Below are positions 6,434 to 42,770 of a stretch of DNA of 64,000 nucleotides, one piece after another. A model generated the notes under the pieces. That model had not been told where the DNA came from. It saw only the letters and a program-made list of their open reading frames with translations, and did not search any database. The translations under genes and the position numbers were made by a program. How positions within the stretch are numbered: position 1 is the first letter of the stretch; each line of letters opens with the position of its first letter. The DNA lies in sequence record NC_019405.1; one strand, 5' to 3'.

Positions 6434-9400
6434 ATGGCCGCCGCCATTGCCCTTCCGATCGTCTCCGCCATTGTCAGCACGGCGATCAGCTACGCCTTCC
6501 CGAGCGACGGCCCGCGCCTGCGCGACACCAAGGTCTCGGCCTCGACCTACGGCAATGTGATCCCGGAAATCTACGGGACCGCCCGCGTCGGCGGCAACAT
6601 GATCTGGTCCAAGCCGTTCACCGAGAAGAAGAAGAAGAAGCGGGCCGGCAAGGGCGGCTCCTACTACAATGAGTACACCTACTACTGCGACTTCGCCATG
6701 GCGTTCTGCCGGGGTCCGGTCAAGGAAGTGCGCCGCATCTGGGCCGACGGCAAGGTGATCTACGACACCACCGGCGGCTCGGAGGTGATCGACAACAACA
6801 AGTACCGCTTCCGCTTCTATCCCGGCGACGAGGCGCAGCTTCCCGACAGCCTCATCGTCGAGGACAAGGGCGCCGACTACGCCCCCGCCTACCGGGGTCT
6901 CTGCTATGTCGTGTTCGACGACTTCGCCCTGGCCGATTTCGGCAACCGCATCCCGCAGATCATGGCCGAAGTCTACGCTGGAGACGAAGGCGGCGCGGCG
7001 ATCACCGACATCGTCCCGCTGCCCAGTTCTCCGGTCACCGGCGGCTCCTACCAGCTTGGCCAGATGATGATCGACGCCGACCGGGGCTACTTCTACCTCG
7101 TCGATCCGGTGTCCAACCCGGCGGGCACCGTCCTGCGCCGCTTCCTGCTGGCGAACGGCAAGGAAGACCGTCGCGAGATCGTCTCGATCCCGCAGGCCCA
7201 GTTCCCGCCCTCCGTCTATGACAGCCCTGAGCTAACCTCGGTCCGGGGCGTCACTTCCAAGGGCGAGCTTCTCTGCGTCTTCGGTGGCGTCAACAACTAC
7301 ATGCGGATCGAGAAACTCGATCCCTATTCCTGGCAGTCGCTGGGGACGATCGGCCGCAGTTATCCGTTCGAGGGCACGCCCGAGAACAGCCTGGAGCACT
7401 CCAACACCAACTTCGAGATTTCGCGGGACGAGAAAGGGAATTATCTCTGCCTGACGCTGGGGGTGTTTGGCGAGTACAACATCTTCGACCCGAGCGATAT
7501 GTCGTTCAAGGCCAAGGGCGACATGGCGGGCTGGAACGGACCAGCGACGCCGATGTACATCTGCGCCCGCCAGGGCGGCCCGGCGACCAGCCGCCGGTTC
7601 TACCATGTCACCTATGCCGGCGGGGCGTCCTTGCAGGTGTGCAGCCTGGGCGAGGTGCTCTACAACCATCCGGTGGAGTTCCCCGGCAATTCGCAGACCG
7701 CCACCGCTTGGGCCTTCTGGGACGAAGGCGATCCGGGCGTGGTCTTCTTCTATTCCGACGGCCCCAATCGCTACATCGCCAAGTGGTCGGAATCCACCGG
7801 CGTGCTCGCCTGGAAGACTCAGCTTCGCAACTCCGATCCGTTCTGCGGCTATGGGGTCTATGGTCTGCGCGCCCGGATCAAGGATAACGAGTTCCACTGG
7901 GTCTACAACAAGCACCTGTTCTCGATCAACACCGCCACGGGTCAGTGGATCGACCGGACCTTCGACCAGGACTTCTACAAGAGCGACAACGACAAAACCG
8001 CCGAACAGGTCAACGACGGCGACAAGGGCCTGCTGTTGCCCCGCGACATCTCCGAGGACTATGTCATCTACGATCCGCGCCGCAACATCGTGATTTGCGT
8101 CGGACAGATTCAGGGCCAAAACGGCATCGTCCACGTCGGAGGCTACACGGGGGGCAAGACCTCGGTGGGGGCCATTGTCGAGCGTCTTCTGGTCTCGACG
8201 GGGCAGATGACCTCGAACGACTACGACCTGACGCCGCTCTACGACATCCCGGTCTACGGGTACGGCTACGCCTCCTCGACCGACATTAAGTCGATCATCG
8301 CCGAACTGCGCAACCTCTTCATGTTCGACCTCGTCGAAAGCGACGGTCGACTGGTCGCGCGCGTGCGCGGCGATCAGGACCCTGACGCCGAGGTGCCCTG
8401 GAAGCTCCTGGGCTCCCAGAGCGGCCCGACCCCGGACAAGGCCGACTACTGGAAAGAGACCCGGATGTCGGAGTCCGACCTCCCGGCCTCGATCGACCTG
8501 ACCTATTCGAACATCGATGACGACTACAATCCGTCAACGGCCAAGTCCAAGCGGATCGCCTCGCCGGTGGCGACCATGCTGTCGCGTCAACAGGTCAAGG
8601 CCGAGTGCAACCTCGTCATGGACGCGACCGAGGCCAAGAACCGCGTCAACATCATGCTCTACACCCAGTGGGAGGAACGCACGCAGCACCAGACGGCCCT
8701 TCCCTGGCTCTACGCCAATCTCGACGCCTCGGACCTGATCTCGGTGACCATGGAGGACGGCCGCAACTATTTCGAGCGGATCGGTTCGATCGAGTTCGGC
8801 GCCGACTTCTCCTCGCGCCTGGAAACCTATGGCACCGACAGCGGTGCCTACCTTTCGGACAAGACCGGCGACGGCGGCGGCGCTGGCCGTCCGACCGTCG
8901 TGCCGGCCCCCAAGCCGGTGGTGGGCTTCATCCTCAACACCCCACTGCTGCGCGACACCCACGACAGCGGCGGCAACTTCTCCAACTGGTATAGCGCCAT
9001 CGGCGCGGGCGCGCCGGGCGTGTTCCTCGGCGGCACGATGTTCAAGTCCGCCAACGCCCAGGACTATGTCGATCTCTACCAGGAGCCGGAGAGCGCCGAG
9101 TGGGGCACGGTGATGGGGGCCGTGCCCTCCCCCTCGCACGGCTGGTTCGCGCTCGACTGGGAAACGCGCATCACCATCACGCCGGCGGTCGACTTCTTCG
9201 AACTGGAGTCGATCACCGACGACGAGCTTTGGGAAGGGCTCAATCTCGTGGTGATCGGCGACGAGGTCCTCCAGTTCCGCGACGCGGTCCAGAACGCCGA
9301 CGGCACCTGGACGATCTGGAACCTGCTGCGCGGCCGGCGCGGGACGCAGTATGCCTGCGACAATCACAAGGCCGGCGAGCGGTTCGTGTTCCTCGACGAG

Positions 9401-40276: not shown

Positions 40277-41155
40277 CGTTTTCCGACGGGCTGAGACTAC
40301 ACCCATCAGCAATCCCGCTTCGAGGATTATTCCCCAGGTGCGACCCCAGGTATTCCCTCGACGTCCACCAGACCCCTTGCGGTAGTCCAGTCCGAGATCA
40401 TCGCCGCCGTTCTTGCGCACCCCGAAGGGATTGCGGGTCTGGCGTTTGACCCATCATGGCGAACTACTCGACAGTTCCTTCCCCGCTGGGCTTGCGACCC
40501 ACTCACCGGCGCTAACCGGCTGACGAAGCTCTTCCTATCGACACCTCGCGGGCTTGCGACCCTTGAGATGACTCCGTTACCCGAGGGCCGGAGCATTTGG
40601 CGACTTACGTCCGCCACTGGACCAGTCTTTGCGTTTTTCATCGAAGCGGGGATTGAACCCGCGACCGACAGCTAGGACGGCTGTTGCACTACCACTGTGC
40701 TATTCGCAAACCCACCAAGACGTGCTGGTCCAGTTGTTCCCAGAGCTTTTGACCCCAGAAATGCAACACGCCTCATATCTTTCGCCTTGCGGGCTACTCG
40801 ACTGCTCTTCAGGACCCCGTCTCCCCCGACCTTTCGGCCAGGATGCCCAGCACCCCTCGAACTGAAGCAAAGCTCTTCACCGCGAAGTGTCGAACCCTGC
40901 AACCCAAACGGTTATCCGTACTCCCTAGACGCGCTTGCACGGGATAGTCCGCTTGCGACGGACTGGCGGTTAAAGCCTCGGAGTTACCCCGGCCCCGCCT
41001 TGTCTCCCACGGTCTTCAGGTCTATCCCCTTTTGCAAGAGGCGGCCAGCTTCCCAGCCCGGACCCGTCGGCTTCCTCTGTCCTCTTGCGAGGTCGGGCGG
41101 CCTATGGGAGACCGTCCCTGTCACCCCGTCGCCGGGGCTTTCGTCAGAAGCGACG
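40277..41155 (-). ncRNA. Large (~880 nt) structured ncRNA, GOLLD-like candidate, with an embedded tRNA-like domain
   Basis: Own promoter (41161-41189) and terminator (40242-40276); no credible ORF; many - strand GNRA hairpins (GCAA at 40488-40500, 40550-40562, 40947-40963, 41081-41092; GAAA at 40830-40837). The family assignment is an inference. Confidence 0.62.
40638..40709 (-). pseudogene. Degenerate tRNA-like element (nominal anticodon TCC) inside the large ncRNA
   Basis: D-arm GCAC-AGTGGTA-GTGC, anticodon stem ACAGC/GCTGT with loop CGTCCTA (G33, not U33), T-arm GCGGG-TTCAATC-CCCGC; broken acceptor stem and no CCA. Confidence 0.7.
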
Positions 41156-41245: not shown

Positions 41246-41274
41246 TTGACATTCTCGTAGACCCATGCTAGGTG
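41246..41274 (+). promoter_or_regulatory. tmRNA promoter (TTGACA ... GCTAGGT)
   Basis: TTGACA at 41246-41251 with a GCTAG -10-like element 16-17 bp downstream. Confidence 0.6.
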
Positions 41275-41275
41275 T

Positions 41276-41658
41276 CGGAAATCGTTGTAATTCGGACAAC
41301 GGAACTGGCGGCAAGACAGGGGTGCGAATCCCCTCGCCTCCACCATCGACGCCCGGCGCTGGGAGTACGCGACTCCTGGGCAGGGAGTGTTACCCTGGCG
41401 GGCTGCGGCCCGAGCCAAAGGTAGCCGGGCGTCGTTGATGGGGGCGACTAGCTTTCGATTGGCGCTCGGGACTGAAAGACGCAACGGTGGGTGACCTCCA
41501 CATCGGCTTGCCGGTGATCGGGTCAGGCAACAGTAAATGTCGCCGCCAATGACAACGACGTCGTGGCTTTCGCCTCGGCTCGTGAAGCCATCGCCGCCTA
41601 ATAAGCGGTAGAGGAGCCCGCCGGGAGCTTGGCAACAGAATCCCGGCAACCCCCTTTC
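41276..41658 (+). ncRNA. ssrA: Circularly permuted (two-piece, alphaproteobacterial-type) tmRNA
   Basis: Acceptor piece with T-arm AGGGG-TGCGAAT-CCCCT and CGCCTCC-A-CCA (ends 41345); intervening stem TCGACGCCCGGC/GCCGGGCGTCG; coding piece begins GGGGGCG (41440) giving a G3.U70 Ala acceptor stem; tag frame AANDNDVVAFASAREAIAA then TAA TAA (41542-41604); downstream GGCAACAGAA motif. Confidence 0.92.
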
Positions 41659-41782
41659 GCAGGCGGGAACACCAACAGGCGATCTGTCGGGCGACCGATT
41701 TCCGATCCGTGTTCCCGTCTTCGAAAGGTGGTCAGGCCTACCCTCTTGGTGTGCTATCCAAGGGTCTGGCCACTTTACAGAA

Positions 41783-41861
41783 CGCGGGGTAGAGGAGTCC
41801 GGTTGTCCTCGTCTGGCTCATAACCAGGAGATCGTGGGTTCAAATCCCACTCCCGCTCCCA
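41783..41861 (+). tRNA. tRNA-Met(CAT), initiator-like
   Basis: CGCGGGG/TCCCGCT acceptor with a C1-U72 mismatch, loop CT-CAT-AA, T-loop TTCAAAT, encoded CCA; only two of the three anticodon-stem G-C pairs of canonical fMet. Confidence 0.88.
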
Positions 41862-41868
41862 ATGCGAA

Positions 41869-42000
41869 CGCCGGCTGTTGAGAACGACGGCGTGACAAGC
41901 TCGGAGAGAACGAGCACTCCAGTCCGGGGTATGAGGCCGGACTAGCGGACGCCGTAGCGATTGCAGGCGTGACACCCGGAGATAGCGGGACCGGCTTTCC
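41869..42000 (+). ncRNA. Candidate multi-hairpin small RNA
   Basis: GCCGG/CCGGC-TTT closing stem, ACGGCGT/ACGCCGT, GCTCG/CGAGC, AGTCCGG/CCGGACT and CCCG/CGGG hairpins. Confidence 0.3.
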
Positions 42001-42087
42001 GAGCCGCATGCTCGGCGCGTAAGACCGCAGGCCTCGGCCATCGGGCAGTGTCAGGGGATGAGGCTAGTCCTCGGCTAACCACCTAGC

Positions 42088-42227
42088 GGTGGAGCTAGGG
42101 CATGCGGTTCGGAAAGCCGGGTTCGCGGTTCGTCCGCTACGAGATGGAGATGTCGCCGGTTCGAGTCCGGCAGGTCCCCCAAAAGGAGGCCTTAGCTCAG
42201 TCGGTAGAGCGCTCCTATCCCACCTTT
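42088..42227 (+). ncRNA. Circularly permuted tRNA mimic, YrlA Y-RNA-like candidate
   Basis: The T-arm GCCGG-TTCGAGT-CCGGC comes BEFORE the D-arm GCTC-AGTCGGTA-GAGC; the acceptor-like stem AGGTCCC/GG(A)GGCCT is closed by a CCAAAA loop; there is no anticodon loop; the ends can pair (GGTGG/CCACC) and finish in TTT. Confidence 0.62.
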
Positions 42228-42312
42228 GGTACGGTGGCTCGACAGGTAAGGCATCGGCCTCATAAGCCGAGGGTTCGTCCCAATCCTGGTTCAAATCCAG
42301 GTCGTACCTCCA
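42228..42312 (+). tRNA. tRNA with CAT anticodon, long (type II) variable arm and U73 (Met or Ile2 uncertain)
   Basis: GGTACGG/TCGTACC acceptor, TCGGC-CTCATAA-GCCGA, variable hairpin GGG-TTCGT-CCC, T-arm CCTGG-TTCAAAT-CCAGG, encoded CCA. Confidence 0.85.
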
Positions 42313-42386
42313 AATAGACGCTTGACCCCCGGCCGCAGGCTGCTAAGCTTCCCCGGTCGGGATCGTCCCGCGTCCTTTCCAAGGTC

Positions 42387-42417
42387 AAGCCCCCGGAGCC
42401 TCGCTTCGGGGGCTTTT
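42387..42417. terminator. Intrinsic terminator at the end of the RNA island
   Basis: AAGCCCCCGGAG...TTCGGGGGCTTTT. Confidence 0.75.
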
Positions 42418-42770
42418 CAGTTCTTGACCACCCGCAGGCGCCGGGCCTCGTTGGCGCGTTCCTCCGCCGCCACGCGCGAGACGTCTTGCAGATGCGCCTT
42501 GGCGATCAGATCGGGCGCGCCCACGGCCCGGAAGGGTACCTTGACGGAAAGGTCGACATAGCGCCGCAAGAGCGGCTCGAACTCCAGACCGCGCGCCTGG
42601 GCGATCCGCGACAATGCGCCGGCGACGATCGCCACGACCAGGACGTTGGTCGGTGTCTCCTTGGTCAGGGTCCAGATGCCCGGTATAGACTGCCCAGGAT
42701 GAAGTTCCTGCCGCGCCACGTCATCGGCGGCGGCGCGGAAGAGGTTCTCGTAAGGGACGTTTTCGAGCAT
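42417..42770 (-). CDS. Hypothetical protein (~117 aa)
   Basis: Start MLENVPYE chosen within the longer ORF-track frame; helical sequence. Confidence 0.55.
   Translation of the reverse strand: MLENVPYENLFRAAADDVARQELHPGQSIPGIWTLTKETPTNVLVVAIVAGALSRIAQARGLEFEPLLRRYVDLSVKVPFRAVGAPDLIAKAHLQDVSRVAAEERANEARRLRVVKN

Follow-up and report, generated by a model that had tools for sequence, protein, structure and literature searches.

A stand-alone YrlA-type tRNA-like RNA element, apart from Ro60, among the tmRNA and tRNA genes of Caulobacter phage phiCbK

The 64,000-nucleotide (nt) stretch of record NC_019405.1 analyzed in this study (hereafter the window; its first letter is position 1) comes from Caulobacter phage phiCbK, and window positions 41860-42320 match NC_019405 positions 103860-104320 with 100% identity. 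In the annotation of the phiCbK record, the interval between two genes labeled "tRNA-Met" is blank. Herein, an RNA element of about 101 nt (42127-42227, plus strand) was identified in this interval, among the transfer-messenger RNA (tmRNA) and tRNA genes of the phage. By its structure, the element qualifies as a tRNA-like domain of the kind found in the Y RNA YrlA. Judged from its sequence, it is not a complete Y RNA, and both strands of the Ro-binding stems are missing. The explanation that we tentatively prefer is that of a stand-alone, "headless" YrlA tRNA-like domain, a putative mimic or decoy of the tRNA body that would act independently of Ro60 within a tmRNA-tRNA operon. Y RNAs with tRNA-like domains are already known, those of phage CcrColossus included. 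A tRNA-like domain parted from the Ro module and from the Ro gene, in the complete genome of a model phage, is undescribed in the literature searched.

The tRNA-like fold, as read from the sequence, spans 42143-42219, with the acceptor end closed and the anticodon end open. It starts with the 5' strand of the closing stem, GAUGGAG (42143-42149), which pairs with CUCC(U)AUC (42212-42219) and corresponds to the YrlA closing stem (model positions 23-26/82-85). In tRNA numbering, UGGAG (42145-42149) represents positions 39-43, the 3' strand of the anticodon stem, and CUCCU (42212-42216) represents anticodon-stem positions 27-31. The variable-loop equivalent AUGUC (42150-42154; positions 44-48, 5 nt) aligns with the GUC consensus of Y RNAs linked to genes for the Ro60/Rsr protein (hereafter Rsr). 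The T-arm follows as GCCGG-UUCGAGU-CCGGC (42155-42171). The acceptor-stem equivalent is a closed hairpin, AGGUCCC(C)-CAAAA-(G)GAGGCCU (42172-42192), in which the acceptor 3' strand AGGUCCC (42172-42178; positions 66-72) is connected through C73 (42179), the pentaloop CAAAA (42180-42184) and G0 (42185), the partner of C73, to the acceptor 5' strand GAGGCCU (42186-42192; positions 1-7). This hairpin has 8 pairs counting C73-G0, with one A2.C71 mismatch and one G4.U69. U8 and A9 (42193-42194) lead to the D-arm GCUC-AGUCGGUA-GAGC (42195-42210), and G26 (42211) leads to the 3' strand of the closing stem. Both arms were also placed by the alignments to the Rfam model and to the clade model R1 described below, and the acceptor hairpin and the closing stem were present in the minimum free energy (MFE) fold. 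The two arms, the loop-closed acceptor-like stem and the pairing of GATGGAG with CTCC(T)ATC had all been proposed in the initial annotation, and all were found at these positions. The 3' tail CCACCUUU (42220-42227) runs up to the first base of the next tRNA (42228), where RNase P is expected to cut. On the other side, a small hairpin, GCGG-UUCGU-CCGC (42125-42137), appears in the MFE fold, and the left edge of the lineage-specific insert lies at 42127-42137, the last sequence common to phiCbK, Magneto and Rogue being ...GGAAAGCCGG(G)TTCGC.

The spacing of these parts is exactly that of a class-I tRNA, with a 5-nt variable loop and G26 in place. All elbow contacts are able to form (U8-A14, G15-C48, G18-U55, G19-C56, U54-A58 and G26-A44), and A44 and C48 of the AUGUC loop are positioned to contact G26 and G15. 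The tRNA-like structure was reproduced by the MFE fold of 42125-42227 or 42138-42227 alone; the MFE z-score was just -0.8, a value typical of tRNA-like sequences. A canonical tRNA gene was not found by ARAGORN or the Rfam tRNA model: there is no cloverleaf, no anticodon loop and no free acceptor end. Both programs were silent at 42125-42227, as had been expected of tRNA scanners. Tested as a two-piece tmRNA, only the 17-nt T-arm matched the beta_tmRNA model, with 8.6 bits. A coding explanation was rejected, the only open reading frames (ORFs) being short ones that overlap tRNAs.

In a permissive Rfam search of 571 nt, YrlA was the sole meaningful match (29.7 bits, E=2e-4). The alignment was to the core region only, model positions 23-85 of 114, with the closing stem included. 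A clade model, R1 (141 positions), was built from an alignment of 23 Rsr-linked Y RNAs, and it matched the phiCbK element with 44.0 bits (E~5e-8 over 372 kb; model positions 34-108, window 42144-42219). The element was the top non-junction R1 match in the whole phiCbK genome.

Tandem tRNAs mimic YrlA in searches of this kind (Chen et al. 2014, PMC4201824), and the tandem-tRNA junctions of phiCbK served as controls. They scored up to 25.3 bits with the Rfam YrlA model, without the closing stem, and 36.7 and 33.1 bits with R1. Because genuine tandem-tRNA junctions score nearly as high as the element, bit scores alone are weak, and the topology was relied on instead. The discriminating features are the closed hairpin, the closing stem and the lack of a complete tRNA on either side: no complete tRNA flanks the tRNA-like fold as in a junction, and its spacer is self-complementary. 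The core identity was 75-78% to Y RNAs versus 68-70% to the junction controls. The 21-nt spacer forms an end-to-end hairpin of -7.3 kcal/mol, and 97 of 5000 shuffled sequences folded as well. Most phiCbK tandem-tRNA spacers have an encoded CCA and no full-span hairpin. Since three of these spacers reach similar or greater stability (-6.6, -8.9 and -22.6 kcal/mol), the spacer hairpin is supporting and not decisive. When viral contigs were searched with a DNA pattern of the module, Karma, permuted modules of other phages and tandem tRNAs were recovered. Eleven matches were tandem tRNAs with ARAGORN calls on both sides; another eleven had a self-complementary spacer and no tRNA call, one of which was followed directly by an Rsr gene.

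The best non-self BLAST matches of the element were unannotated elements in 43-kb Xanthomonas and Xylella phages (Tabio and others), in which about five Y-like RNAs are located directly upstream of a 439-amino-acid protein with TROVE and Ro60-vWA domains. The same T-arm occurs in Rsr-linked Y RNAs, identical in records L020 and L024 and, in the Asticcacaulis RNAs L046 and L052, altered by a single T-loop change (GAA for GAG). In CcrColossus, which is related to phiCbK and infects the same host, about eight Y RNAs lie upstream of Rsr, an arrangement already known (Chen et al. 2014, as cited in PMC12135203). Among the matches listed, Rsr proteins about 60% identical to the Colossus protein were found in Asticcacaulis, two Caulobacter species, Phenylobacterium and others, the Rsr-positive Caulobacter being sp. 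Root655 and sp. KR2-114. YrlA matches of 35-57 bits, almost all of full length, were located upstream of Rsr at all 16 Caulobacterales loci checked. In the consensus of the 23 Rsr-linked RNAs, compensatory changes were present in 21 of 31 pairs. R1 recovered the Rsr-linked RNAs end to end with 38-120 bits, including ones outside the training set.

The phiCbK element is below the Rfam gathering threshold for YrlA (29.7 versus 69 bits). This threshold is uninformative for the clade, because verified Rsr-adjacent RNAs score 30-57 bits, and default Rfam annotation misses the whole Caulobacterales and phage clade for the same reason. The Rsr-adjacent Y RNAs of the clade (L040-L053, L110, L112, L014 and L008) are all under the 69-bit threshold, and arrays of 5-8 Y RNAs per phage have been left unannotated. 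Permuted YrlA-type modules were also seen inside dense tRNA arrays of uncultivated phage contigs (L017 4765-4843, L021 2734-2817, L030 2683-2759, L033 857-947 and L035 7046-7128). The L017 module sits between tRNA-Leu and tRNA-Pro among 23 tRNAs. Within the DNA examined around the modules of L017, L033 and L035, no ORF of at least 330 amino acids was present.

Ahead of the T-arm, the closed acceptor hairpin and the D-arm, the clade consensus has four further parts: first an outer stem, next the UGGYGYAG/UUCCC internal loop, then a middle stem that covaries, and last a UUCNUUCG segment. The middle stem, the UUCNUUCG segment and the UUCCC motif were not found at the phiCbK element, and a motif search for TACTTC, GTTCCC and GNCGAA had no match within 41862-42227. 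The D-arm and the next tRNA are only 17 nt apart, a gap too short, by the clade consensus, for the 3' strands of the Ro-binding stem. The description of the element as a phage Y RNA thus stands for the YrlA tRNA-like topology and the Rfam YrlA match, and fails for the Ro-binding stems and the phage Rsr.

The initial annotation had also suggested looking for a TROVE/Ro60 gene in phage and host genomes, and no Ro60/Rsr gene was found in phiCbK. When phage Rsr was searched by tblastn against 50,697 phage records, 99 matches were obtained, including CcrColossus, CcrPW (58% identity) and Brevundimonas jumbo phages; no Shapirovirus or Poindextervirus was among these 99. Relaxed tblastn and an Rsr profile run over the whole phiCbK genome returned only noise, and a Pfam search of 10 large hypothetical phiCbK ORFs detected no TROVE domain. 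In phiCbK, the site syntenic to the Colossus Rsr cassette holds nothing but a 380-nt gap between a helix-turn-helix gene and the genes for lysis. On the host side, C. vibrioides was not among the Rsr matches listed in the genome scan, and a link between C. crescentus and Ro60 was not found in the literature searched.

The ~101-nt element behaves as an indel among related phages. It is identical in 13 Shapirovirus records (phiCbK, Karma, Ccr2, Ccr5, Ccr10, Ccr29, Ccr32, Ccr34, S2L and RBC57). In Poindextervirus (Rogue, BL10, RBC63 and kin) it is absent, and the conserved RNA upstream abuts the tRNA. Magneto and Swift have an unrelated insert of ~140 nt in its place (CcrMagneto, L003, about 965-1111). 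This insert contains two tmRNA-like motifs, GAUUCGACGG and GGUUCGACGGG, and has no Rfam or R1 match. What Colossus and CcrPW carry at this locus (L007 905-1064; L016 1355-1514) is a degenerate permuted element that combines the 17-nt T-arm of phiCbK, unchanged, with a closed hairpin of 9 bp and a D-like hairpin; the closed hairpins of the two phages differ by one compensatory C-G to A-U change. This degenerate element is far from the Rsr/Y-RNA cassette of these phages, and the Colossus-type phages have an extra T-arm-like hairpin, GGGGG-UUCGAUU-CCCC, at the locus. The Colossus element was rejected as a full Y RNA, its forced R1 alignment being weak at 23.7 bits. An origin of the phiCbK element from the tRNAs of the phage itself was also rejected, as no tRNA shares its acceptor or anticodon-stem sequences. 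The 100% identity of the 13 copies was rejected as a sign of selection, the flanking tmRNA, spacers and tRNAs being equally identical. Copies that never vary, within flanks just as uniform, leave no ground for claiming purifying selection.

Immediately upstream of the element is a separate, unannotated, conserved structured RNA of ~255 nt (41870-42124, plus strand), which was found in all 30 phiCbK-like Caulobacter phage records. Its 5' domain has a repeated motif, GGCGUGACA, and two conserved hairpins. Its 3' domain consists of a 26-bp helix that pairs about 41987-42012 with 42099-42124; an alignment of the interval from six phages revealed compensatory changes at 5 positions of this helix. 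The helix encloses GUCAGGGGAUGAGGCUAGUCCYCGGC, a variable hairpin and GCYAGGG, and one inner hairpin is conserved. No Rfam family matched 41870-42124. phiCbK and Ccr10/RBC57 (L002 and L015) are 98-100% identical over the tmRNA, the spacers, the tRNAs and the module, versus about 84% identical in the 3' domain of this RNA (41987-42124). By sequence comparison this domain reads as a recombinational mosaic patch whose changes preserve the helix. A scan of viral contigs for the motif of the upstream RNA detected only Karma and Rogue, and a single metagenome scan for diverged relatives of the locus returned two unrelated coding sequences.

The initial annotation had assigned 42088-42227 to a single element, and this extent had to be corrected, as 42088 belongs to the upstream RNA. 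Its outer helix between GGTGG (42088) and CCACC (42220) was also withdrawn: by comparative folding, GGTGG pairs locally with CCACC at 42080-42084. The outer helix was ruled out further by Ccr10 and RBC57, which carry the identical module together with a different hairpin and no GGTGG. The variable terminal hairpin of phiCbK, CCACC-UAGC-GGUGG, is missing from Rogue, BL10 and RBC63, and the fold of the whole 366-nt interval (41862-42227) likewise pairs GGUGG locally and recovers the long helix. The supposed TTT end belongs to the leader that precedes the next tRNA (42228) and is not a terminator; a terminator-like site occurs at 42399-42418.

In the RBC57 record, the annotation has a hypothetical protein of 41 amino acids that spans upstream RNA sequence and the beginning of the module (L015 1703-1828, minus strand), and this is probably a spurious gene call over structured RNA. 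The core motif of the 3' domain of the upstream RNA (42038-42078) recurs in Brevundimonas phage Bajun (L039 1484-1590). The Bajun copy is located in the intervening segment of a permuted tmRNA, presumed to be excised, between the CCA of the acceptor piece and the coding piece. The settings in phiCbK and Bajun are alike in that tRNA-type processing sites bracket the shared core motif.

The role that we regard as most likely for the element, on our analysis, would be that of a Ro-independent tRNA-body decoy or handle, with a non-functional relic as the main rival. The element would be co-transcribed with the tmRNA and the tRNAs, and RNase P, cutting where the downstream tRNA starts (42227/42228), would generate its 3' end. 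The product is predicted to adopt an L-shaped tRNA body without an anticodon loop and without a free CCA end. Such a mimic, independent of Ro60 and neither cleavable nor chargeable, may occupy proteins that read the tRNA elbow or the acceptor-T stack; its most plausible targets would be host tRNA-directed nucleases, for which it would serve as a competitive decoy. According to a proposal by Hughes et al. (2020, PMC7790460), the YrlA tRNA-like domain, uncut by an anticodon nuclease, competitively inhibits it. The decoy idea is plausible because of that proposal and of the investment of phiCbK in tRNA supply and repair; its translation-related genes comprise about 30 tRNAs, the tmRNA and the RtcB tRNA ligase gp240 (3e-124). 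The structured analogue with a compensatory change in Colossus and CcrPW, together with the permuted modules in the tRNA arrays of other phages, suggests by comparison of the sequences that such elements may be functional. In its most specific form, a putative decoy that titrates a host tRNA-directed defence nuclease or a dominant-negative competitor for a host partner of the YrlA domain in Rsr-positive hosts, the proposal is on balance unlikely.

Several observations weigh against the explanation of a stand-alone YrlA tRNA-like domain. No Caulobacter tRNA-directed nuclease was linked to the element. It is dispensable in nature, as Poindextervirus lacks it and the near-identical Magneto and Swift carry a replacement. 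The 13 copies and their flanks are 100% identical and offer no variation. The covariance-model margin over the junction controls is small (44.0 versus 36.7 bits with R1, 29.7 versus 25.3 bits with Rfam YrlA). The A2.C71 mismatch lies inside the acceptor hairpin. In the thermodynamic fold of the 366-nt interval, the T-arm was mispaired with upstream sequence, although this fold was used neither for nor against the module.

The main rival holds that the element is a non-functional relic, a Y-RNA gene or tRNA-like fragment brought by illegitimate recombination into a mosaic hotspot of RNA genes and harmless within a processed spacer. We consider this possible, if rather doubtful. The pattern of presence, absence and replacement among close relatives fits a relic, as does the mosaic locus itself, in which the upstream-RNA patch was swapped between phiCbK and Ccr10/RBC57 while the rest stayed 98-100% identical. 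The different insert of Magneto with its tmRNA-like GATTCGACGG motifs and the recurrence of the upstream RNA core motif in the Bajun tmRNA gene point the same way. The lack of Rsr and of a Ro-binding stem, and of any sequence variation for a selection test, are equally in keeping with it. However, a decaying fragment would be expected to lose some of its parts, and all helices and elbow tertiary nucleotides of the element are intact with exact tRNA spacing. The domain is neatly sealed by the closing stem, and Colossus and CcrPW have a structured analogue with a compensatory change at the same site, which likewise argue against a relic.

It is improbable that the element is a processing or stability module of the upstream RNA, one that recruits RNase P, RNase Z or the CCA-adding enzyme, or protects the 3' end of a 366-nt composite RNA (41862-42227). 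The arrangement itself would suit such a role: the element is fused ~2 nt from a conserved RNA with tRNAs on both sides, and the 3' appendage is interchangeable, being the module in some phages, an unrelated insert in Magneto and the degenerate element in Colossus. The 7-bp acceptor stem is moreover the determinant of RNase P cutting in M. smegmatis YrlA (PMC4201824). Nevertheless, phages without the module already have a tRNA right after the conserved RNA, with the same RNase P cut, and a stem closed by 5 nt with a paired G0-C73 would be a poor RNase P substrate.

Very improbable as well is a Y RNA that partners a host Rsr through a non-canonical site, such as one in which the closing stem and the CCACC tail pair with upstream sequence. 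Some Caulobacter, Asticcacaulis and Phenylobacterium chromosomes do encode an Rsr ~60% identical to the Colossus protein, and the heptamer GGUGGAG at 42088 resembles the UGGYGYAG motif of the clade. This heptamer, however, is part of the variable hairpin and is absent from Ccr10 and RBC57, which have the identical module. The missing middle stem, UUCNUUCG and UUCCC motifs and the mere 17 nt 3' of the D-arm also speak against a host-Rsr partner, as do the two negative results on the host side given above, for C. vibrioides among the Rsr matches listed and for C. crescentus in the literature searched.

There is equally little likelihood that the element is what remains of two adjacent tRNA genes, a 3' half followed by a 5' half. 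This is the classic YrlA false positive of which Chen et al. (2014, PMC4201824) warned, and the scores of real phiCbK junctions (25.3 bits with YrlA, 36.7 with R1), a core identity to Y RNAs that is little above the junction controls (75-78% versus 68-70%), and the possibility of reading CUCCU-AUCCCAC after the D-arm as an anticodon stem strand and loop are all compatible with it. The topology speaks against it: the "acceptor" strands are mutually complementary and joined by 5 nt with no encoded CCA, while phiCbK tRNAs encode CCA, and the "anticodon-stem" strands are complementary to each other. Neither half is matched by phiCbK tRNAs beyond generic D and T arms. Two separate intact tRNA genes at this site in relatives, the arrangement named in the initial annotation as contrary to its proposal, were not seen in any relative; what relatives show there is no insert at all, an insert of unrelated sequence, or a permuted element in degenerate form.

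To our knowledge, a splicing endonuclease that cuts bulge-helix-bulge motifs is not known from bacteria. [quoted passage not shown]

Of the known systems closest to the element, YrlA (Rfam RF02553; S. Typhimurium and M. smegmatis; PMC4201824) has the same order of variable region, T-arm, closed acceptor stem, D-arm and closing stem, the same conserved tRNA elbow nucleotides including the 15-48 Levitt pair, no anticodon and, in M. smegmatis, a 7-bp acceptor stem. Unlike YrlA, the phiCbK element has no GNCGAA-type Ro60-binding stem and no linked or phage-encoded Rsr, and it is situated in a tmRNA-tRNA operon and not in an rsr operon. With the Y RNAs of Colossus, the Xanthomonas and Xylella phages and Caulobacterales it shares a nearly identical T-arm with flanking GAUGUC/GGUC and the same D-arm, and CcrColossus shares both its host and its phage subfamily with phiCbK. 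These Rsr-linked Y RNAs adjoin Rsr and match R1 end to end, whereas phiCbK has only the core, at a different locus. The Yrl1 and Yrl2 RNAs of Thermus phage phiLo (PMC12135203) are likewise phage-encoded Y-like RNAs, proposed as hijackers of PNPase-type RNA-processing factors; they are defined by a CGAA bulged stem that binds the phage Ro60, and phiCbK has neither. The permuted tRNA genes of Cyanidioschyzon merolae and the two-piece tmRNA of Alphaproteobacteria also encode the 3' half before the 5' half, and the permuted tmRNA of phiCbK lies 450 nt upstream of the element. Those genes have their own anticodon loop or tag frame, CCA and a long excised intervening segment, in contrast to the element, which is joined by a 5-nt loop and has no anticodon, CCA or reading frame. 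In mascRNA-type 3' modules and viral tRNA-like structures, a tRNA-shaped domain is also carried on, or released from, a longer RNA, with a free acceptor end; the phiCbK element is closed at that end and open at the anticodon end.

The role of the YrlA tRNA-like domain has been a question since 2014, and the two halves of the Y RNA were never separated in nature, because the known examples are all tied to Ro60. With the tRNA-like half alone, no Ro60 and a genetically tractable model host, the partners and the function of the domain would become directly testable, and Magneto and Swift (a different insert) and Rogue (no insert) are natural comparison strains. If the decoy or competitor proposal is true, the element would represent a new class of RNA-based phage counter-defence as well as a natural separation-of-function allele for the YrlA tRNA-like domain. 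If it is a relic, it would still be a clean case of RNA-gene mosaicism in a phage RNA operon. Surveys limited to TROVE-positive genomes overlook such elements, and phage tRNA arrays can conceal tRNA mimics that tRNA scanners do not report.

The surrounding RNA genes were also mapped in the window. ARAGORN reported a 96-nt "tRNA-???" with a four-base anticodon (ccgc) at 7516-7611 on the minus strand, inside a tail-protein gene; no Rfam tRNA match was present there, and the call is probably a false positive. A GOLLD RNA (165 bits; 40288-40774, minus strand), unannotated in the phiCbK record, has a tRNA-Gly (40637-40710) embedded in its variable region. On the plus strand, the permuted two-piece tmRNA gene (41253-41692) and tRNA-fMet (41783-41861) come first, then the 366-nt interval (41862-42227) with the upstream RNA and the module, and then a tRNA (42228-42312) whose anticodon is CAU and whose variable arm is long. 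This downstream "tRNA-Met" has a class-II-like variable arm and an irregular D-stem, and it is kept in all relatives. Just past it, a terminator-like hairpin with a U-run (about 42388-42418, plus strand) probably ends the RNA operon.

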